Source: Orbicella franksi
Lineage: Eukaryota
NCBI GenBank assembly: GCA_964199315.1
Contig: OZ116698.1
Coordinates: 43,710,001-43,774,000, forward strand
Reading direction: 5' to 3'
DNA length: 64,000 nucleotides
Below the pieces are notes generated by a model. The model saw only the letters and a list, made by a program, of their open reading frames with translations, ran no database searches and was not told the origin of the DNA. Shown here piece by piece: positions 15,351 through 63,824 of this stretch (its first letter is position 1; each line of letters starts with the position of its first letter). A program made the translations under genes and the position numbers.

Positions 15351-16895
15351 CTTTATTTAATGAGGGTAAAAACACTTTACAGTCATTGACTGATAAACTC
15401 GTGGCCCTCCCTTAAACAATTAAAATATAAATCACAATGATTTTAAAAATATCTAACTATGAATAATAATAAGTATAAAACTGGTAAAATTACTAACATC
15501 AATAAAATGGACTAAAATCTTGTTGGTGCATGCGATACAAAGAGTTAGAGGACACTAAGAAATTGTGAAATGTTCAATATTTGCATACCCCGTCTTTATA
15601 AGCTTGACGCATTTCTCTTTAAAAACATTAATGCTATCACAGGATCTTATGTTAGGAGGTAGGGAATTCCATAGTGAAGTTGACGTAGAAGCAAAAGTTT
15701 TTCATCCTTCTGTCGCTCTGTTGCTCTTAGGGCATCGTAGCGTGATGTGACTATAACGCGAGGATCTTACCGATATGTCACTCACACGTATCAACTTACT
15801 AGATATGTATTCTGGGCATTGACCATGTAGACATTTAAAGATAAGGCATAGCTTATTAACATTGATTTCTTCATAGAAGGGCAACCAGTCCAACTTGTTA
15901 AATAAGTCAACAGTTCGTTCATCCCTTGCTGTTTTAACATCCAATATTACCCTGGCCGCTCTCTTTTGCAGTCGAAAGACTCGTCTGATATTTGCTTTAG
16001 ATGTTATACTCCAGACTGCTCCGCCATACAGAAAAAGGGGCTTTATGGTTGCATTGTAGAAGAGTATACGCTCATTTAAAGGTAAATAATGCCTAATTGA
16101 TCTCAAGATACCGATGCGCTTAGTAAGTTTCTCACATAAATGTTCAACATGCTCGTTAAAAGAAAGGTCCGGGTCAATATATATTCCAAGTAGTTTATAG
16201 CTTGTAGTAGTTTCCAATACATCTCCCTTGCTGGAACGGATTTCCATCTGGTCGCAGTGGTCCATCTTTGCACTCAGTCTAGTACCGGTTACGAACATGG
16301 ATTTTGTTTTGGCCATGTTCAGCTTAAACCGGTTATTGCCTGTCCATTTTTCCAGTTCTACAGTACTTTGACATAGTCTGGAACAAAGTCCAGGGGTATT
16401 TGTGTAAGGTGAGTGTGAGCTCAGAGTCGTGTCATCTGCGAAGATGTCCACAGTAGTGGGCTGCGATACTGCCTCCGGGAGGTCGTTTATATGCACTAGG
16501 AAAAGAAGAGAAGAGAGTACGGATCCCTGTGGTACTCCATGCGTCAAAGCCTGGGGCGAGGATTGTGCACTCCGGATAACCGTGCGCTGCGTTCGGTTTT
16601 GAAGGAATGAACGCACAAGGACCAGGCTGTTGTCCTCTAGACCATAAATGCGCAGTTTTTCAATCAATATCTCATGGTTAACAAGATCGAAGGCCTTCTG
16701 GAAGTCGGCGAAAACTAAGCCATTTATCCGGTTGTCATCAAGATTTAACAGCATTCGGTCGACAATGTCTATTAAGGCTGTCTCAGTCGAGTGGTGTTTC
16801 CTAAAGGCAGATTGCAATGAATATAGGAGATTATTGTCCTTGAGAAAAGCAGATAGAGAGTTGTGCAAATGTCTCTCGAATATTTTTGAAAGTAC
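15293..16895 (-). mobile_element. 5'-truncated non-LTR retrotransposon (CR1/L2 group), RT domain, one premature stop
   Basis: ORF VLSKIFERHLHN...FADFQKAFDLVNH...GVPQGSVL...FADDT...LGIYID. After TGA at 15702-15704 the frame continues KTFASTSTSLWNSLP... to TAG at 15555. 3' tail is (TTAC)13. Empty site ttgatgt/agagtaggg in copy 1 (~6545-6560); no TSD. Confidence 0.92.
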
Positions 16896-27509: not shown

Positions 27510-28487
27510 TCACAAGGCGGATCTCACATCTTCTGGTTCTTCGGCAGCGCTTTCCAGTGGCTTCGACTCGATCAACTCTCTGATCATGAAGCTTCGTCGA
27601 GCGTTCGGGACGGGTTGAAATGCACCAACATGCACGTGCGGGATCTCCAAAGACCCATAGCGTGCGGTTGGACGAATAACACTCTGTGGTGTCGGGGACA
27701 ATTGGAGATGAATTGGAGCCGCTACACAAGGTTCATTTGCAGTGATTCTCTGCGGAAAGGCGCTAAATTCACAGTGGGGCGGGAATTGCAAGCTACAAAA
27801 CTGATGGCTAAATCCTTCGACGAACAAACTGAAGTGATGATTCGAGTTCACTTTGCGCACGAAGGCAGGCTCGTTCGGTTTTTGCGGAGGACGACACTTA
27901 AACCTCTTGGCTCGGCGTAAAAAGCTGCCACTTCCAAACATGTCCCCAGAGGCTGGATGCAAAGTCCAGTAATTCCCCTTGCCTGGTTTGCCAAAATAGC
28001 TTCGAGGAACTTTTATAAAGCAGTCGTTCAGGGACAGATTGTGTCGAATAGAATTCTGCCATTTCTGCTGGTTGCTGCGAAAATATGGAAATCGCGTCAT
28101 GATGTATTCGTAGATTTCATTCAGTGTTCTCATGCGATATGGAGAGCTGTCGATGGCCATTGCTATCAATGCGATGTAGGAAAATGGCGGCTTCACTTCT
28201 TCGGAGAGGTAAGGCTTGCTTCTTGACTGCATGGTAGGTTTAGTTGCTATGTTGTTTCGCTTCGGCTCGGGGCTTTTTATATCGGCCGCAAAGAGCGAGG
28301 ATTGGATAGACGGCTGATGAAAGTTTCCTGTATGGTACACCAGTGGAATATCAGAAGTTATTTCCTTGTGTCCGCTCATCGGAACCAGCATAGTGTCAGC
28401 ACTCGACGGGCTTCCTGTGTCTATTCCTGTCTGTTCTTCAACGCGATCCTTCCCGACTGAAGCACCTCTCACGACCGGCAGCTCCAT
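27510..28487 (-). CDS. FoxAB: Single-exon forkhead-box transcription factor, ~325 aa, best fit FoxAB
   Basis: Complete winged-helix domain at 27894-28193 ([14 protein letters not shown]...[20 protein letters not shown]...[29 protein letters not shown]) mixing FoxA-like and FoxB-like residues. eh1-like FMIRELI at 27570-27590. First ATG at 28487. Fox family is certain; the subfamily call is from memory, not a tree. Confidence 0.85.
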
Positions 28488-28819
28488 GAAAAATTCAATC
28501 AAAGACCTCTTGCACTTATCTAGCGGTTTTGTTACTTCCTAAGCTGTTTCCAGCAGTGAAATCCACTCAGGCCCGTGCGAGTCAGTCTACCTTGCAACAG
28601 TCAACACTGCAACTGATCCGAGAGCTGAGGTCTCGCACTTCTTCAGCGTAAAAGCTTCTAAACTCTTTTATTTTGAACCTGCCAGCAAGACTTCAGACCA
28701 CCCACAAATTGATGTGCAACCTATGTTTTCACAGCAAACCTTTTGCGGCGCTAAATTTTGTACGCTGTCTTCGAGCAGACCAGAAAGTCCTCAGAATCAT
28801 GTAATGCGGTCGAAAGGGG

Positions 28820-46114: not shown

Positions 46115-49113
46115 TCAGTACAGATCTTTGTGCAGTTTGTGCCATTTTTCAATGTGTCTGCTCGGTGATTCAATCATTGACTTCCACTGCTCCTGCCCAG
46201 AATCAAACGAATCAAATCCAAGAATAACCGTTCCCAATCCCCCACCGCCAACGTTGATCTCGGAATGATTGACAATCTTGAGCACTACGGTAGTAAGAGA
46301 TATCTGGTCAGCGGACACATTGAAGTTGAACTTTTCATTGAACACCGGATTGAGGCTGCGTCTTTTGACACGTGTGTTGGCTTTGGATAAGCGGACGCCA
46401 TCACAGTACAGGGCGAGCTTAACGTAAGGGTCTGCAGAAGGAAAAGCATTCAAAGTTAAGTTGGCTCTCACTTATTGCACAACCATACCAACTTTTCCTA
46501 TGAACATTGGCACTGGATTGTAAAATGGAGAAAGTCTGCAATTCGTTATCGATCGTTATGTGACTTGTATTTTTCACCATTTATTGATTGGGGAGTTATA
46601 AGTTATCTTATTCTACATGTAGTTTTACTTTTATTTTTATTCTGTTTTTGCTTTTTGAAATCAATGCCTTCGTAGGTGCCCGCAGTAACTTACCTGTGCG
46701 GTCAGCCGTTGCCTTTGGTAAGCCGCGAATCTTCGTGACTGTTACAATGAGTCGGCCGCTGATTGGTCGAAAGCATAAAGAAACACAAAGCTCTCCAAGG
46801 TCGTCTGCCTCCATCTTGAAATTTAAGAGAATAAAGATGTGGGTTTGTGAGATTAATATCAAATCTAAGAAATGATTTCCGACGAAAAATTTTGAGAAAA
46901 AAAAAAAAAAAAAAAAACACGTAAAGAATCTGAAGGACAATTTACCGGGTTTGTCAAAGGTCGCAGGCGCGAAATTCAATAATTTTCGTATTTTACAAAG
47001 TGGTTTTAACTTACTTTAAGCGCAATCTCTGTTTTTCTGTAAAGATCTACGAACGAGAGGCAACAGGCAATTAACAGAAAAAGCTGACTACGGTAAAACA
47101 AGACGGAACACAAGGAAACCGACTCGTCCCCAGTTTTTGCACGGCCGAATTTCTTCGGCTGGCAGTCTTAGTGTGAATGTCACCGATAAATCATCCCCTT
47201 ATTGAACAAAACTTAAATTGAAACGGACGAAGATAAGTTTTGACAATAATTTGATAAACAAAGCGTAACTGAAATGGCCACAAGACAGTTTCTTCCTAAT
47301 AGTTCGCATACCCAAAAGGATAGAGAAGCATTGAGAGGTAAGCCTCTGCCCTTCCCTCGACCGTCCTTTCTCAACATTTTGAGCCTTGCATTCTCAGACC
47401 CTTGCTGCAGTGTGATCTAGTCAACTTACCCCGTAGGGATGCGGAGGTGCAAGATACAGCCATTTGGTGATTGAGAACGAGGCTCTGTTTTCCATCAACT
47501 TCAACTCTGACAAGGGGAAAAGGATCTCTCCTATGACGTCATCACCATAACGGTCTTTCAATTTGTCGTGAAAATTCACCACCCTGAACTTAAGCTCGTA
47601 TTCTTTGATTCTGTCTTTTGAGAAACCTGAGATGACAAATGTCTCGTTAAAAATAGGGTCTGGTGTTCCTTCGATGATCTTGGTGCGTTGCCAACAGTAT
47701 TGCTGCGGGAGCAGGGATATCTTCACCAAAGGGTTGATACCTTCCTTATTGTCAGCTATGGGAAGATCGACCGCTTTTATGATGTTCACTTGCAGTTCTG
47801 TCTTAGCGACATTGTAGTGAAGCGCGAAACGAATCTTTCCAAGTTTACCATCTGTATTGTCAGGCGAAGGTGTTCTGTCTTCACCTATGAAGCCAACTTC
47901 ATTTAAGTTTATCTCCCTTGAATTGCTTTCTGGTAAATCTAATCTCTTCTTTTCAGGCGTCGCTGGAATATTAGCGCCAGAATTTGCTTTCTTTCTTTTC
48001 GCAGGGCTGTTTTCATCCCCAGAAACGCCAGAATCCTTGTCTTGTGTAAAACTTTTCTCTTCTCTGTCGACCTCCTCTTCAGTCTTATCCAAATTATCCT
48101 CAAGTGACGCATGCGTACTAGAGTTAGAGTCTTCAACATCCGGGGCACTCACTGGAGATTTCTCACGTGACCTGCTATCTGTCTCTTCCCCGGATAGGGA
48201 GCTTTCGTCAATGTAGGTTTTTGCATTACCATTCACAACATCGTTAGAATAGCTACATAAACGATGATAGTAGTATTTTGTCGGAGGAGGACAACCATAA
48301 CTACGATTCTTCGTCTCTTGAACGTTCAAAGAAACGGTTTTAGGGAAGGACGAATCCACGACTTTGTCTCCCATAACAACTTGAATCTTTTCCGATGCTT
48401 CCTTCACCGCCTTTTCTCGTGAACGTTTACCCGTTAAATTCTTGTACGCGCTGACTCCCAGAATTATAAACAGGTAGCCGAGAGCGAGGCCAATGAGAAT
48501 TGGCAAAACCAGGATGCCAAAGAGACATAACAAACCCGTGTTGTTAGAGGCAAAACGCGTCATAAAATTACCTGATTGTGGCTTACTGCGAGGATCAAAA
48601 TCTAAAAAAAAAAAGAGAGAGCAGAAAAGTTTGTGCGTTAAATATACAATAAATATTGGGATTCCCTCAACAATATTTAAATGTCGGTAACCTATATTAT
48701 ATTTCATATTTACAAAGTGTAAAGAGGTTTTTGAAGTTTTTACAGTTTTTGCAAGCTGCTATATATATCGTGATCGGTCAGTTCAACACGAAAATAAGCG
48801 ATATAATCGCACAATAAAATGGCTATTTTATTCCTACTGAGATTATAAATCAAAATATAGTTTATACCCACATTTACCAACCGACGCAACCGAATTTGCA
48901 ATTCCCGGACCAATTATTTGAAGAGGGCTCGTAAAAAAAAAATCAAAGCGACTGCGAGAAAATTCAAAGGACCTAAAATGACGGATGAAAAGATGACATT
49001 GAAACGGTTAACTTAATTCAGTAATGAAATATCTTACCGCGTGTTTTTCTGTTATTGTTTTCTGCTCTGGCCGATTTATAATATCGCTGTGAGCTCGACA
49101 GAAGAGGTGCCAT
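46115..49113 (-). CDS. Synaptotagmin-like protein A (TM + C2A + C2B), ~561 aa; exons 49113-49038, 48601-47430, 46814-46694, 46431-46115
   Basis: All introns are GT-AG and the phases join (1,0,1; 1686 nt total). TM LLCLFGILVLPILIGLALGYLFIILGV. C2A LGKIRFALHY...DPIFNETF. C2B LGELCVSLCFRPISGRL...DPYVK...LNPVFNEKF...KWHKL. Confidence 0.88.
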
Positions 49114-51534: not shown

Positions 51535-54500
51535 ATGGAAATACTGTCAAATGGAACTAAACAATACGCTTTGAGTAAGTATTGCTTAAATCTTTTACTT
51601 CGTAAAATGTTATGAAAGCTATAGGGGTACATAGTTCGACCTAGAACAACGTTATATTCATTGTAAAATTTGCATCCCATACTGAAAGAATTTGTCTGTG
51701 CAAATGCTGCTTGAACTTTTGTTCCACCTTGGTTGGACAGTTAAGTTCCTTTATGTAAGTTTAATCATTTCTAACTTAGCTTTGCATGAAAGGTTCTGCA
51801 AGCTTTCTGCTACAAAACAGAATAACCTGCAATGGAAAATTTCACATTTTCTTCAGGGTACGAGAGTTGTACGGTTACAGCAATACATATGTTTACCTTT
51901 CGAGTAACTATTTTCTGAGACTAAACAATTTGGAGATATGGTGCTAAGCGACAGATTTGCTTGCAGATGTTTAATGTGAAAAGCATGTTAGAAACAGAAC
52001 AACAGAAATACTATTATTTTCTTTGTACATTTGAGCTTTTGCAGCTACGCCCTGCATGGGATGGTGTTTCCCAAAAGGGCGGCATTACGTACAGAACTGA
52101 ATTGGTTTACCTTAGATTTCTTAGGCTTTATTTACAACTATAAGCATTCGGTTATATATGACTTTTGACCATTTTTATTCACCTCTTTCATGCTGTAGCT
52201 CAAACAATTTGCAATTACTTGATTTACGAAATAAAAGATTTCGTCCTGACAATTTTTGTGCCGTTCTGATACGGCAGGTGGAGTGACAGGTGGCAACCAG
52301 CCGAGTTATGTTTCGGGTATAACAATCAGATGGCTTTTATTTTAAACTATCATCTAATTAGCAAATTTCAATATGATCAGGAAAACACTTTTAGATAATT
52401 GCTAATTGCTGATCAAAAATATTTAAAACATTATATAGCCTGAAATGAATTGATTTTAAGCTCAGGGTAAATATACCCGGGAACTAATATTTATTTTGAA
52501 CCCTCTAATATGTAATTGTTACATGATTGCTGCTGCTCTGTGAAACATAGAGTTTAAATATTATTACAGAACCATTCTAATGCTTTTAAATATAAAGTTA
52601 AAATATAAGACTTGAGGAAACCTGTATTTCCAAACTCGGTCCATTTTGCTTCCGTACAATCACGTTATGTTGTATTCAATCAGCTGTGGTTTGTAACATG
52701 ATATTAAAAACGTTATTCTATACTTAATAATATCATCTAAATATAGGCAAAACAAAGACAAAATGGAATGCGATTATTGGAGTGATTTATTTTAAAATTG
52801 AATGTTTCCTCTAATAAAGTATTTCACCGAACTTTTTTTTTTACAGATCTCTCGGACCAGTCCCCTGACGAAGCTGACGTCATAGCACAGGAAAACTCGA
52901 CTGACGTCACAGCGTTTCTTTTTCCCGCCATTGGCGCTGTGCTTATGCTCATGTTTGGTGGGTTATTGTTTTCAAGCGGAACATCCTTCAGTAAATCTAA
53001 AGCAATGTCCGACCACAGGTTCAAACGAAAATTTGAACAGCAGTATGGACGAAGGACAATACGTTTTCATAACATACCAGACAAGATTGCGAAAGAGCCG
53101 TCGTCTGTTCTACAACAAGAAAATAATGACGTTGTTGATGCTGTGATGAAAGAATATCAAGATTTACCGCAGTACCAACCGCTCAGTGGATTAGCTGGCA
53201 ATATGGCTGGATTACGCAGGCAAACATGCGCAGTAAATCTTATTCGACCAGAAGTGACAGAGAGGGGAGTAAGTCCGATCCATTTGACGGCAAGAGAATA
53301 CACTTCGGATTACGACAATCCGTCGTATAAAGATAAGGACAGTGAGGCGGAACATGAAGATGATGTAAACAAGAAAAGCTCGCTTACTATTACGCTTCAA
53401 AACAAGGATATTGTCGTTGAAGATGATTTTACGCAACGAAATAGCGCTACATCTAGTGGCATTGGTACAAACTCACCAGACAGCTACGAAATTGATAGTT
53501 TAGAAGAATTTCCTGCTAGTAACAACGATTCTCTCGACCTTGCTGAAGCAGAGTTTCCTGGGTTACGAGGCGGAGCTCCTTTAAATGACGGCACTCGCCT
53601 GTCTGTACATGCTTATGACCGTGGGGTGTACGGTGGGGGGCGATTAAGTGTGCTGGAGATGGAGAGAGCGCCTAGCTCCATGTGTTTAAGGGGTTGTAGC
53701 TGTCCCATGCATAGAACAGAGGGTGGGAGAATGGACACCAAACGGAAGGATGCTCGAACTAGCGATGAGCGACTCACTTGGGGTGATATTGCACTAAATG
53801 TAAACGGTAATTTGACCTTGGAGAACGAAAGTGACGTTAGCAAAGCGTGTGGTAATATGTTAAGGCTCGCTACTCCATCAGCAGAAATATCAGGTCCGCT
53901 GACTGCAGACAACATGCGAGAGATGGATCAAAGTCCGTTACGGCGAATGGATTTGGAGAAGTGGCTTCACGATGTGGAGAAGTCCCGCAAAACAGGCGAG
54001 GTAGTTTACGGTGAAACGTTAGAATTCCCAGATGCGAAAACAGACAAGCGTCGCAGAGATTACTTGACCACACAAAAGAAAGAGTTTGTGCCTAGTCGAA
54101 GGAAAATGCGAGCACCACTTCAAGAAAGTTTACAGCTGTTGAAAAAGTTGCAGCTTGTTGCAGACAATGATTTGGTTCCAGCGCAGAATCCAGTCCACCT
54201 CGGCGGTCGCGCAAGCTGCTTGGACACTGTGAGAGCACCAAGCTCGCTATGCCTTTGTGGAGGCCAATGCAGCGTGCATGGTCAGAATGAGATAACCTCT
54301 GACCAGTGTAGTGCGCCAGTGAATGTAATTGAAGATGACACTGAAACTGATGAGAGTACTGAAGTTGCGAAAGGCAGCCATCAGCTTAATTCAACAAGAA
54401 CAGAACGTATCACAAAAGGCGGAAGACAGAGTACTTTGAATCTTCTTCGCGCGTCAAGTGGAATGTGTATTCATGGCCCTACATGCACGGTTCATTGCCA

Positions 54501-55872
54501 CAAAATGGGAAATGCTGAGTCATCGATACCAGAATCTAGGATTGAGAGTGGGAGAAGTCAAGTGCTTACTCAAAAGCAAGATACACATTCCGAATTAAAA
54601 GAATTGAGAGGAGCCAGCGTGTTTGGTGAATCGCAAGTTTCACTCACTTACAACACATTGAATAATCAAGGAATTGGCGATTGCGCACAAGAAGAAAGCG
54701 TCTCTATGACAACGGAGTGCAGTGAAAATGAACAGCGTGGAGCGAGCTCCTTTGGAAATTCACGCTCATCAAAAACTCAAGAGATCAATGATCTAAACAC
54801 TAGAGGTGCTAGCAGTTTTGCAGAACAGCCTCTGAAACAGTTGCATGCTAACTACAGTCATGAAATGAACAGTATCCAATCATCTTTGGGCGAAATTAGG
54901 GGCGCCAGTGGTTTCGCATCGCTGGATGAAAGTATTGCGGGCACATCGAGTGTAACGTTAAGTTTTGCAGTGGAATCTGACGTCGAAGGTTTGAGCACTG
55001 ATAACTCTTTGATGGAGAGAAAAAGGGCTATAAGTGTAGAGACATCTGTTGAAAGCGGCAGAGCCCCTGATCGAAAGCGTGGCTCCAAAAACACAGCCAA
55101 AGCACCTGTGAGCCCCACAGAGAAACAGAACTATCATACGACCACGTGGAAAACTGAAGACAAGGAAAACCTTGTTGAACCAAAAAACAACTTGTTCATT
55201 AGTCGCGACAAAGGTTGTAAAATTGGAACAATTGCTCGTGCAGAAAAGATGGATTTTAGCGATGAACAAAAGCAACACTTCAAACCGTTTGACGAGCGCA
55301 TTCTTAAAGTGGGTAAAGACACAACAATGATGTGTACACTGTTAAATGCACTTCGGCGAAATGGAAAACAACAACGAAAAGACACTGAAACTTCCAAGCA
55401 CAATGTTATTCATCGTATTGACGAAGAAAACGTTACGAATGGCAAGGAAACTTCAGTCGGGAGTCTTAAATTTTCAGTTTTGTATAAGGGAGCTGATTCT
55501 GGGACGCCTTTGCTTTACGTCACTGTTCTAGGTCTCGAAGGTGTGACAACTGAAACAGTTACGACAGACAGTACGGTTTATATAAAAGTTTGTTTATCTC
55601 CTAAATTCACAACATGGAGACGAACAAGAGCTCTGAATGTTTCAGAGAAGCTGGAGTTTAAAGATCATTTTATTATATCAGGGGTGAAGCCAGTTGACTT
55701 GGAGGGAGCTATCCTTCGATTTGTCGTTGTTTGTGTCGGAGAAGATGAAAAAGTCATTGGTCAACTTGACGTGCCTCTTGACGAGCTCAAGTCGCGTGAC
55801 AAGTTTAAAAGGACTTGCGCGCTTCATGTACCTTATTGCGCAAGGAATGATGGGATTACTGAACTTGAATAA
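51535..55872 (+). CDS. Synaptotagmin-like protein B (TM + very long linker + single C2), ~1021 aa; exons 51535-51574 (tentative), 52847-55872
   Basis: 3-kb open exon after a strong acceptor (T-run, acag| 52846). TM FLFPAIGAVLMLMFGGLLF. C2 GSLKFSVLY...VYIKVCLSPKFTTWRRT...IGQLDVPLDEL. Phase-1 upstream exon MEILSNGTKQYAL|GTAAGT. AATAAA at 56189. Confidence 0.8.
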
Positions 55873-57358: not shown

Positions 57359-58389
57359 ATGACGGTAGGCACTCTAAAACAATGGCTTTTTAAACTTTCG
57401 CGTTTTTTAAAGTCTTGGGTTACCCTTGTTCAAAGTTTTAAACTAATCACTATTCGTCATTGTGTTTTCAGGACTCGAGTGTTCTTGGCGTGATTCTTGG
57501 CTCAGTGCTTGGTTTTCTGGCCGGCGCAATAGTGGTGTGTGTTGGATATTTCGTTTACGCCAGACGATCCAAGACATACAATCCACAGTCGCGCGATGTG
57601 CGCGCGAAAATTGATTATTACTCGGCGAGTAGTCCTGAAGGTGCTTTTCTCGTCGCGCAAACACGACCAGTTCAAGTACAGCCAAATGTGTACACGTTGG
57701 CCAAGTCCTCGGCGGAATCATACCCGGAAATTACCGAGCTAGATGATGGTGAACAACAGAGAATTCGAATAACCAGGCCGTATCAAACTGGCGCTATTAC
57801 CACAATCGACGAAGACGGCGAGGATGTCCAAGACGGTAGCGAAAGGCCGCAAAGTCTTGAGAGCGAGGCCATGACCGGTGGCCACAAACCCAAGCTAACA
57901 AAGCGAATGAGTTTGCCTACTACCTTAAAATCAGATGGATTAGTTCACCCAAACCCAGAGGAATTCTTTAGAAAGAAAAGTTCGACCGACGAGGAGGAAT
58001 GCCGGCTTGAGTTCTCGTGTTTTTACGACACGGCAAGTCGTGAACTACACATCACTGTAATTCAAGTTGTTGGGATTTCTACACCAGACGAGAGTTTCCT
58101 CCGCCCGCCAAACTGCAGTGTGAAAATGCGCATCTTGCCCGAGATGTTGTCCTGGCAGTGGACGAGGAAAATTTCTCGAACAACAAGCCCCGCTTTCAAC
58201 GAAACCTTTATTGTGCCTGGTTTTGTTCACAATAAGCTGCGAGAATGTACCGTACACTTTGTGGTGTTGGATTTTGATCATGTACAAGACAATGTTTATG
58301 TGATTGGAGAAGTTTTCATGCCGTTATCTGAACTAAGAGCGAACAGGCTGGAGAAAATTATCAAAAGGGTGAACCCACTTTCCTTCTAA
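57359..58389 (+). CDS. Synaptotagmin-like protein C (TM + single C2), ~307 aa; exons 57359-57364, 57472-58389
   Basis: ATGACG|GTAGGC, 107-bp intron, ttttcag|. TM VLGVILGSVLGFLAGAIVVCVGYFVY. C2 RLEFSCFYD...PAFNETF...VLDFD...IGEVFMPLSEL. AATAAA at 58956 and 58967. Confidence 0.82.
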
Positions 58390-61009: not shown

Positions 61010-63824
61010 ATGGTCAACCAAGGTAAGTGTTTCAGTCCTTTTTGTATTGTTTTACTCGTCAGTTGACAATATTTACAGTCCGCTGTAACAGCACTTTAAT
61101 CCTTATGTTTTCGTTTTGTTTCTTTAAGTTGTTTTGGCGGTTGGTTTGGGGCTGGTCGCTGGATTTGTCGTCGTAATTATCTACTTCATGGTACAGTTTA
61201 TTCGCAACCGTTCTGTGAACAACGAGTATAAATATAAAAAGCTGACTTCTGATCCGGCTTATGGGTCTCGAGCAGTTATCAAACAGGACATTCCACCGTT
61301 CTATATTCCACAGTCTGTTCCCGTACAACTCCAGCAACCGATAAGGAGTGAGAGATCGGGAAGTATTTCAAAGGATGACTATCGAAATGGACACTCACTT
61401 CTGTCGGCGACAGTTCACAGCGTCAATGTAAAAGGCAAAGCGGAAGATCGCGGGACGGGAATTCAACTGAACGCTATCAACACAGGTCCTCTCAGTCCGC
61501 CGCTCACTCCACGATCCCTAAAACCTCCCCGTAAAATTTCGCCGACGAAAAAGCAACTGCCCCAGAAAGAAAATCTCTCACTCCCTCAGCATAGAAAGGT
61601 CGCGGTTTACAAGAAATTTCCCGACAGCAATTTGGGAAAATTGGAGTTTTCCCTTTACTACGATCAATCGTTTCGTTTGTTGCAGATTTACGTTATCCGC
61701 GGGATAAAAATCACGAGTTCCGAGGACAATGTCCCACCCGATGTCTTAGTAATTGCATCGTTGAGTTTTAATAAGAATCAAATTTGGGAGCAGAAAACTC
61801 GAATGGTGAAGAATTCAAATGATCCGCAATTCAATGAAAAATTGGAAGCGCACGGGATAACCTCAGCAAAACTTCATGAAAGTACGTTACACTTTCAGCT
61901 CTTCAATGATGGCGCCAATACAATAATTGGGGAAGTTGAATACTCACTAAAGGAACTTCCTGCGAACAAGTTAACAAGTCAAATACTTCCTCTCATTCCA
62001 GTGGAAATAGATGAAACTTACTGCAATATTGAGGTACGTGCACTTAATAACAACATCTTATTTTCTTTCATTGCGTTACTATTTCGTGTCACTTTGTTTA
62101 TTTCTTTTCTTTTCTCATGGTCGCTTCGAATCAAAATGATTGGTAAAGTTACAAAATCTCTATAAGTAGAGAATATGAGCTTTAGGAAACCAGATATCAG
62201 AAACAACTCAGAGGAATCTTAATTAATTGAAGTAAAAGTGTTTTAACGGACCCAAATGCAAAACAGTCAAACTTTCCTCGTTCCAATCTATTCAAACTTC
62301 ACAAAAAGTTTCTCGCTTCAGTGCGCACTTTATATTTTTAGTGTCACAAAGGTTTTTTTTTTCCTGATCATAAATCGTATATAAATCTATCTTTTTATCT
62401 TTTAAAGGCCCCTTTTTTTACTTCATATTCATCATTTTAAAAGGCATTTTCACCAACATAAAATTTTAACTTTTTTCGAGTGAAAAAAAAATCACTGAAG
62501 ACATATTTCATGGGTAAAAATAGAGAGACATTCGGAAATTCGAGTTCCTATAGGACAATGAAACACGTCAGAAAGTCAACAAACGTGACGCAAATACATT
62601 ATTTTTCCTGCTTGCTGGAAAAATACACTACAGTTCGAAAAATTAGACAAATTAGGTAAACCCTGAAATGATGAGAGCTCGTAGTTTCAAGCACGTAGTT
62701 TCACATCCTTGCGTCTCGTTTATATCTGTTTATCAGTGTACATATGTCTCATGTATAAGGGTTGGGAAGCGTTTGGAGCTTAGTTTTGCCTAATTAAATC
62801 AAACAATTCCAGAACGAGCCGCTAGAGGGGACTTTAAATCTGAAAACGTCTTTATTTATTTGTTATTTTTGTAAACTATCCGAGAATGCACTCGATGTCT
62901 CATCGTCAAATACCAGATTACCGCATTGAAGGCGTTTTTGTAAACGCCCTAAAAGGTGGTGAACGATGAAACTGGCTAACTTCAATTCACAAAGTCCATG
63001 CAGCTAAAATACGCATGATGAGGCCATGAGTCGTGTAATTAAAACGGTAAAACCCTCATCACTGTAACATGTTTCATTTACGCTCAGTTTACAAAAATAA
63101 AAATGCCAGTTTATTGCTCTTAAAGAGCTTTGAGATAGAAGGGTATCATTTTTGACATTTCAGGGCATAGCTCTTTAGCTAGGCGTAACTCGCAAATTCC
63201 TGTGTATCAAAGAAACATTCTATGATTTGGTATTCGGTTTCATTGTAAGTAAGTTTGTAATTAATTATCTACATTTTTACACTTTTTGTGGTTTTTGTTT
63301 CATCATTCTGCACTGTTTGACATGGTCATGGTTACTGCACGTTCCCAAGTGACTAAAACAAAAACAAAAAAAGGAAAACAAAGAGATTTTCGATTGTTTT
63401 GACGAGGTAAGGTTACTCAAAAAGTTCAAGTGAAAGCCATTTGCTGATAGACAGAATTCCAACACGTTTTTTAATGCACAGAAGAGCAAAGAAGTCAAAA
63501 TAGCAGTATTCCAGCCACAATGATTACTAATGATCTCTATTTAAAGACAAAAGGGCTAGGTGTAATTACATGTGATGGGGCTCTTTTTCGTATTACGTCA
63601 CTGTAGAGTTCCAAGGTTTGCATCGTGGCTTCTAGACAACTGAAAATATTGAGAGTCTGAAATGGGTTTTGCCGTTTAATGTACTTGTCCTTTGTAACTG
63701 ACACTTCAAAACTCAAAGACTTCCACGTGTCACTCGTTTTTAAAGCAACACTTTTACCAACTTAAACCATAGAGTGAATCAATATTTCTTTTTGCAGACC
63801 GTTTGGAGTCCACAACTCTCTTGA
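61010..63824 (+). CDS. Synaptotagmin-like protein D (TM + C2); exons 61010-61022, 61129-62033, tentative last exon 63798-63824 (~314 aa)
   Basis: ATGGTCAACCAAG|GTAAGT, then tttaag|. TM VVLAVGLGLVAGFVVVIIYFMVQFI. C2 LGKLEFSLYYD...DPQFNEKL...IGEVEYSLKEL. Strong phase-0 donor GAG|GTACGT at 62034. Acceptor tttgcag| at 63797 gives TVWSPQLS*, followed by AATAAA at 63905. The 3' end is uncertain. Confidence 0.78.

Follow-up and report, generated by a model that had tools for sequence, protein, structure and literature searches.

Gene B lies in a 64,000-nucleotide stretch of the Orbicella franksi genome (assembly GCA_964199315.1, contig OZ116698.1, positions 43,710,001 to 43,774,000 of the forward strand; the whole stretch is called the window here). 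It encodes a predicted membrane protein of the synaptotagmin type whose long linker contains three copies of one ancient composite module of ~26 to 30 amino acids. The N-terminal half of the module reads G-G-R-x-S-x-L-x3-R-A-x-S, and the C-terminal half consists of clustered Cys and His residues in the framework C-x2-G-x2-C-x2-H, to which a fourth and in many cases a fifth such residue is added close by. The module probably belongs to a known general kind of element, namely short Cys/His clusters that adjoin phosphosites in disordered cytosolic tails; the module itself appears to be undescribed. Its conservation indicates that it is under purifying selection, and metal binding by the units is a reasonable, unproven hypothesis suggested by the pattern of conserved residues.

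Anatomy of the repeated module

The consensus GGRxSxLxxxRAxSxxCxxGxxCxxH has exactly three matches in the gene B protein, referred to here as units 1, 2, and 3 (Table 1). The initial annotation had described three ungapped repeats of 26 amino acids with 12 invariant positions and one extra Cys or His within each core. The translations are exactly as it quoted them, all three units agree at the 12 positions, and the extra residues are C300 in unit 1, C487 in unit 2, and H559 in unit 3 (residue numbers follow the open reading frame and are 3 above those of the true, spliced protein). The best pair of units is identical at 15 of 26 residues. In 300 residue shuffles of the gene B protein, the best pair had 12 identities and the best triple had 4 invariant positions.

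At the DNA level, the units share 38 to 44 of 78 nucleotides (49 to 56%), and 8 to 12 of the 13 to 15 residues common to unit pairs are encoded by different codons. Because of this low DNA identity and the differing codons, the units are best regarded as old duplicates kept by selection on the protein rather than as a recent DNA repeat. It is very improbable that their similarity is a functionless leftover of internal duplication in a linker under low constraint. The region is predicted to be disordered, as that explanation would have it, but the protein motif has been kept while DNA identity between the units is near saturation, stony corals and sea anemones alike have retained the motif, and mean column conservation is 0.78 to 0.83 in the units versus 0.66 in the whole linker.

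Column profiles were drawn from 137 unique units (44 of unit 1, 51 of unit 2, and 42 of unit 3). For each unit type, the two glycines of the N-terminal half are present in ≥94% of unique sequences, and Leu10 and Ala15 are near invariant. Arg6 is Arg in 42/44, 51/51, and 29/42 units of types 1, 2, and 3, respectively, with corresponding values of 43/44, 51/51, and 28/42 for Ser8 and 41/44, 46/51, and 41/42 for Ser17; Arg14 is retained in units 2 and 3, whereas only 28 of 44 unit-1 sequences have it. The Arg/Ser pairs of the RxxS kind to which the initial annotation had drawn attention are among the best-kept positions of the module.

In the C-terminal half, Cys20 and Cys26 are near invariant, Gly23 is invariant in unit 3, and His29 is retained by 41/44, 28/51, and 40/42 sequences of units 1, 2, and 3, respectively. 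The column that supplies the extra ligand is 24 in unit 1 and 22 in units 2 and 3, with column 30 contributing in unit 3 and in many unit-2 sequences. Where unit 2 lacks His29, Cys30 is mostly present instead (R plus C in 15 sequences versus R plus V in 2). The ligand-count variance of unit 2 is below the expectation from column shuffling (P of ~0.005 to 0.01, in a statistic that ignores kinship). Each 16-amino-acid core contains four to five Cys and His residues versus 0.47 expected from the rest of the linker, an enrichment of ~10-fold, and at least four Cys/His fall within the core in 124 of the 137 unique units (~90%), the other 13 having three or fewer.

The units also have individual features. 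Unit 1 reads C-S-C-P-x-H, and unit 2 has an invariant upstream His467 and Cys474. The core of unit 3 is C-x-H-x3-C-x2-H-C, the type kept in sea anemones, and it is followed by a conserved Cys567-His568. The Cys-Pro pair of unit 1 was considered as a heme-regulatory motif, a candidate that was dropped when Pro was found after the Cys in only 10 of 44 unit-1 sequences. At position 54494, an A of the window is read as G in an RNA contig from a related coral (run X2), which changes the His566 codon of unit 3 from CAT to an Arg codon; the mismatch may reflect RNA editing or a difference between species or alleles. Were His566 replaced by Arg, Cys567 and His568 would be left as possible ligands.

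Conservation and distribution of the module

A word-indexed search with the linker as the query returned 125 relatives at 96% to 40% identity, nearly all of which are 850 to 1,050 amino acids long; the named ones are uncharacterized proteins of Orbicella faveolata (96%), Stylophora pistillata, and Montipora foliosa. Conservation in orthologs had been named by the initial annotation as a check on the module, and all three units were found in 26/26 rows of a stony-coral alignment (45 to 92% identity to the window protein), with copies in anemones as well. An exhaustive profile search of 1.84 billion representatives recovered 40 proteins at an E value of ≤0.001, with full-length matches that include Nematostella vectensis XP_032226717.2 and an Actinostola protein; no homologs outside Hexacorallia were found among these representatives. 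Within reach of these searches, the gene B family thus appears to be limited to stony corals and sea anemones.

In a tree of the family, the branch of Orbicella and Stylophora and that of Montipora each have three copies of the unit. Two deeper rows contain three good copies and two good copies plus a weak one, respectively, and the sea anemones (Nematostella, Actinostola) have one or two. At least one unit copy is therefore older than the divergence of stony corals from sea anemones. In Nematostella XP_032226717.2, amino acids 438 to 527 form an array of ~10 tandem decapeptides from the unit core, each with one His and a Cys-Cys pair. Another internal repeat (SIEPIAS...) lies near amino acids 1095 to 1170 of the same Nematostella protein, which has two C2 domains.

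Within the 497-Mb genome of this coral, a profile built from 70 units matched only the three units (65 to 66 bits), and the next-best match scored 19.9 bits (E value of 0.4). The module is therefore considered specific to the gene B family.

Comparison with known domains and folds

The units seem to match no described domain, in agreement with the failure of the initial annotation to recognize a named one. A Pfam scan of the full gene B protein at an E value of ≤1 returned no family. A scan of amino acids 255 to 581 returned two chance-level matches (13.4 and 12.5 bits), both located between units 1 and 2, and at an E value of 10 on the repeat region there was no match on the units and PF00098 was not found. 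A profile search of the PDB with a 70-row repeat alignment gave a best E value of 0.58, with chance-level matches to cardosin and MAT1 (E values of 0.6 to 1.4), and feature searches of the ESM Atlas with amino acids 265 to 575 and 536 to 572 gave no usable match. Literature searches on motif strings and on gene or protein identifiers, in which the motif-string papers were judged by title, returned nothing on the unit motif.

The units have a formal likeness to the Cys-Cys-His-Cys (CCHC) zinc knuckle (PF00098) and other mini zinc fingers, which are likewise 10 to 14 residues long with three Cys, one His, and a Gly near a ligand. However, the knuckle spacing C-x2-C-x4-H-x4-C is not matched by any of the three cores; the units are instead spaced C-x-[C/H]-x3-C-x2-H or C-x3-C-x-C-x2-H, spacings with no Pfam match, and AlphaFold2 (AF2) predicts no fold for them.

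The host protein and its transcript

The gene B protein begins with a short N-terminus bearing three N-x-S/T sequons, followed by a single transmembrane helix, a basic stretch, a linker of ~820 amino acids that is predicted to be disordered, and a C-terminal C2 domain. On the basis of the positive-inside rule applied to the basic stretch, the N-terminal sequons, the transmembrane helix, the C2 domain, and the analogy to synaptotagmins, we infer that the linker and C2 domain (~960 residues) lie on the cytosolic side. The initial annotation, which had placed the units on the cytosolic side of a vesicle protein, agrees with this architecture. Its description of the linker as acidic and poorly conserved was borne out in part: the linker is mildly acidic (net charge of −13 over 823 amino acids), but its conservation is not uniformly poor, as it contains conserved islands and four RGASxF repeats. 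The segment best conserved between corals and anemones is a juxtamembrane block, which is helical in the AF2 model at modest confidence and has no Pfam match.

The R-G-A-S of the RGASxF repeats is invariant in 26/26 coral orthologs. Anemone homologs have three to six copies, including four tandem RGASAFVEDT in Actinostola. In these alignments the repeats look like a second conserved R-x-x-S motif family in the linker, apparently undescribed. Readings of RGASxF and RAPSS as PP1 RVxF or 14-3-3 mode I/II sites were dropped, as the consensus was not fitted.

The C2 domain is divergent. It scores 24.2 bits against a Pfam C2 cutoff of 22 when the C-terminal 150 residues are scanned alone and is missed by the full-length Pfam scan. 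AF2 models it with a predicted local distance difference test (pLDDT) score of 75 to 89, and Foldseek matches the model to the C2 domains of PI3KC2alpha and KIBRA and to the C2A domains of RIM, Doc2, rabphilin, and Syt1 (E value of ~1e-8, target TM score of ~0.8). Like synaptotagmins, the gene B protein combines a glycosylation-type N-terminus and one N-terminal transmembrane helix with a presumably cytosolic linker and a C2 fold of the synaptotagmin type. In contrast to that family, it has a single C2 domain and a linker of ~820 amino acids; no second C2 domain, and no C2B exon that would complete a tandem C2A-C2B arrangement, was found downstream of gene B on the forward strand.

The open reading frame of gene B has 1,024 codons, of which codons 1 to 16 (52798-52845) are intronic, as is base 52846 of codon 17, the last base of the intron. 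A polyadenylated RNA contig from a related coral is continuous over 52847-54229 and has 163 nucleotides spliced on at 52847. The last 30 of these map uniquely to 51545-51574, and a GTAAGT donor lies at 51575, directly after exon 1. Because of this splice and the unique mapping, gene B is assigned a small first exon, an intron, and a main exon, and the spliced coding sequence yields a product of 1,021 amino acids. The RNA contigs together cover 52847-54649 with no further splice and span all three units; the Cys/His units are present in the mRNA of a transcribed, spliced gene. Raw-read RNA runs X23 and X24 contained no reads on the stretch, and the transcript information comes from Logan contigs only. 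The Orbicella RefSeq model XP_020631963.1 starts within sequence that is intron 1 here, and a Montipora model has a spliced-type N-terminus resembling that of gene B.

Candidate functions of the units

Because the linker is probably cytosolic, disulfides are unlikely in the units, which leaves metal binding, lipidation, or direct contact with a partner to explain the conserved cysteines. The preferred reading, which we hold tentatively, is that each Cys/His cluster is a small Zn(II) site of the zinc-clasp kind, disordered when alone and located beside conserved kinase-type serines. Each cluster would be a minimal knuckle or "zinc clasp" that holds one Zn(II) through three or four ligands, and the unit would be unstructured alone, becoming ordered only with metal and possibly also a partner protein or another unit. 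The serines two to three positions after Arg, directly upstream of the cluster, would be sites for basophilic kinases, and their phosphorylation would toggle the engagement of metal or partner. Such toggling could control what is bound by the long tether that joins the C2 domain to the vesicle anchor.

Zinc binding is favored because His and Gly are conserved with constant spacing, units usually offer four ligands, and the register is ungapped over 26 residues. The His of the C-x2-H spacing, fixed in 41/44 unit-1 and 40/42 unit-3 sequences, is not required by lipidation. The column-shuffle signal of unit 2 is not relied on. As for the kinase sites, the units contain conserved Ser residues with Arg at −2 or −3 (R-x-S or R-x-x-S). 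In units 1 and 3, Ser17 has hydrophobic residues at −5 and +4 and Arg at −3, which is the CaMK/AMPK/PKD-type kinase consensus, and the four RGASxF repeats supply additional R-x-x-S sites in the linker. A precedent is the zinc clasp of CD4/CD8alpha and Lck: the cytosolic tail of a membrane protein is unstructured apart from a short Cys motif, which becomes ordered only with Zn and whose Zn affinity is modulated by palmitoylated Cys residues nearby (PMC12198760). The clasp (CxCP plus CxxC, one Zn) resembles the units as a short Cys motif in the disordered tail of a single-pass protein, and its CxCP is echoed in the C-S-C-P of unit 1; it differs in that there is no sequence relationship, each unit offers three to five ligands including His, and there are three units per chain.

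Several observations weigh against the zinc reading. AF2 models of the full protein have pLDDT scores of 26 to 30 and no secondary structure over the three units. A single unit modeled with the 70-row repeat alignment reaches only 65, with confidence peaking on the Cys/His core (pLDDT of ~70, one helical turn), and VIA-align found no chain with a Z score of ≥2 for this low-confidence model among 48,161 PDB representatives. The unit spacing fits no known Zn-binding consensus in the Pfam scans, the fourth ligand is not at the same position in all units, and sporadic ligand replacements occur (C to W, F, Y, or G; H to R, Y, Q, N, or L). Fewer than four Cys/His are present in 13 of 137 unique units, the shuffle test found no buffering of ligand counts in units 1 and 3, and Ser or Cys takes the place of Arg14 in about one-third of the unique unit-1 sequences. 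The two halves of the module are also separable, as two divergent homologs keep the Cys/His tail only and a Nematostella copy has the Ser half without the Cys core. The low AF2 confidence is nevertheless compatible with a Zn site, because such a site would order only with metal. A complex prediction of three units with two Zn, run without controls, scored 0.01; it gives no verdict and is not used as evidence.

A bolder form of the zinc reading, possible but doubtful, is that the unit is an undescribed autonomous mini-domain that binds Zn(II) under phospho-regulation, is smaller than the CCHC knuckle, and is restricted so far to Hexacorallia, with three copies in stony corals. The Nematostella protein would then have a tenfold array of His-Cys-Cys sites, and the tether of a vesicle C2 protein would act as a scaffold controlled by metal and kinases.

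Palmitoylation had been the alternative of the initial annotation, and phospho-gated S-palmitoylation is the close rival to zinc binding, a real if lesser possibility: DHHC-acylated cysteines would pin the linker to the vesicle membrane at three points, and phosphorylation of the upstream R-x-S or R-x-x-S serines would oppose acylation or membrane contact, altering the reach of the C2 domain. The host is suited to this, as a putative synaptotagmin-type transmembrane protein with a cytosolic linker. The cysteines have hydrophobic flanks (Met or Leu before; Ile, Leu, or Val after), a sequence context that is permissive only, and the number of Cys per unit varies from two to six among lineages, with shifting positions. 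The array of ~10 Cys-Cys decapeptides in Nematostella resembles a cysteine string, and a Cys or Cys-Cys stands directly after the transmembrane helix in the anemone and in many coral orthologs. Lipidation leaves unexplained, however, the strict ungapped C-x2-G-x2-C-x2-H spacing and the conserved His and Gly; the units lie 220 to 500 residues from the transmembrane helix, and their upstream halves are not polybasic (net charges of ~0, +1, and +2).

The units presumably resemble the Cys clusters of SNAP-25 and synaptotagmin. Together with the cysteine-string protein and the STREX insert of the BK channel, the SNAP-25 linker and the juxtamembrane Cys of synaptotagmin share with the units a cytosolic location and hydrophobic flanks. 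Acylation of STREX is under the control of a basophilic Ser site that lies immediately upstream (PMC3256903). The palmitoylated clusters of exocytic proteins and STREX are loosely spaced and have no conserved His or Gly, whereas the units are fixed in spacing, non-polybasic upstream, and far from the membrane anchor. By analogy with CD4, zinc binding and palmitoylation could coexist in the units.

It is rather unlikely that the unit is instead a docking linear motif (molecular recognition feature, MoRF), free of metal and lipid, that binds a folded partner in a fixed conformation. A kinase, phosphatase, adaptor, or 14-3-3-like reader could be the partner, the Cys and His residues would be contacts, and the three copies would provide avidity. 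Docking would account for the ungapped conservation over 26 residues, which includes the non-ligand positions G4, G5, L10, A15, and P16 and the hydrophobic columns 1, 13, 19, and 21. It also agrees with the location of the motif within predicted disorder and with the many other conserved short motifs in the linker, among them four to six RGASxF repeats. The ~10-fold enrichment in Cys and His and the presence of at least four ligands in 90% of units would, however, be unusual for a plain docking motif. Canonical 14-3-3 modes have a Pro at +2 and are not fitted by the units.

A redox or reactive-cysteine sensor, a role that the initial annotation had put forward, is improbable. In such a sensor, reversible thiol oxidation, for example, during oxidative stress in symbiotic tissue, would alter the state of the linker; the one point in its favor is that clustered cytosolic thiols beside His are chemically suited to this role. 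The module is, however, also conserved in Nematostella and Actinostola, which are not known to host algal symbionts, and the Pfam and PDB profile searches found no similarity to redox families.

Anthozoan-specific membrane-trafficking proteins are almost wholly uncharacterized, and members of the gene B family are labeled only "uncharacterized" or "hypothetical." The present analysis defines this family, corrects the gene model, and locates within it a compact module that appears to be strongly selected. If the units bind zinc, they would represent a new minimal metal-binding motif and an instance in which a synaptotagmin-like tether of early-branching animals is controlled by Zn or kinases; if they are palmitoylated, they would be a new case in which a long linker is stapled to the membrane at several points in a switchable manner. 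Because a single lineage-restricted protein family is concerned, the general impact is moderate.

Features of gene B and neighboring genes

The window contains four clustered genes, each encoding a transmembrane helix, a variable linker, and a C2 domain (Table 1).

Table 1. Coordinates of gene B, its repeats and domains, and the clustered paralogs in the window
Feature	Position	Strand	Description	Basis
Unit 1	53635-53712	+	aa 280-305; core C-x3-C-x-C-x2-H	65.9 bits in own genome
Unit 2	54202-54279	+	aa 469-494; core C-x-C-x3-C-x2-H	66.5 bits in own genome
Unit 3	54418-54495	+	aa 541-566; with trailing Cys567-His568, to 54501	65.6 bits
Gene B exon 1, coding part	51535-51574	+	ATG plus 13 codons (MEILSNGTKQYAL) plus first base of Asn codon	
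Gene B intron 1	51575-52846	+	GT..AG, 1272 nt	RNA contig splice
Gene B main coding exon	52847-55872	+	ends at stop codon	open reading frame and RNA contigs
Single transmembrane helix	52909-52977	+	AF2 helix at aa 42-53; topology inferred	sequence; AF2
Juxtamembrane block	53026-53187	+	…VLQQENNDVVDAV…LPQYQP…	ortholog alignment
RGASxF repeats (four)	54607-54624, 54736-54753, 54802-54819, 54898-54915	+		alignment
Single divergent C2 domain	55453-55827	+		Pfam, AF2, Foldseek
Clustered gene	main exon 47421-48707	-	transmembrane helix, linker, C2	
Clustered gene B	open reading frame 52798-55872	+	transmembrane helix, linker, C2	
Clustered gene, third paralog	open reading frame 57460-58389	+	transmembrane helix, linker, C2	
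Clustered gene	61134-62165	+	transmembrane helix, linker, C2	

On the reverse strand, a C2B-like exon at 46127-46438, the only C2B-like sequence in the window, matches the second C2 domain of the Nematostella protein (E value of 5e-12) and is assigned to the neighboring reverse-strand gene, giving that paralog tandem C2 domains. Just upstream of the open reading frame of the third paralog, an RNA contig contains a 107-nucleotide GT..AG intron at 57364-57470 (forward strand), where contig depth is ~550, far above that of gene B. Elsewhere in the window, an open reading frame at 27510-28502 (reverse strand) encodes a forkhead (winged-helix) DNA-binding domain, indicative of a Fox-family transcription factor gene, and another at 15702-16868 (reverse strand) contains reverse-transcriptase motifs typical of a non-long-terminal-repeat retrotransposon resembling long interspersed nuclear elements.

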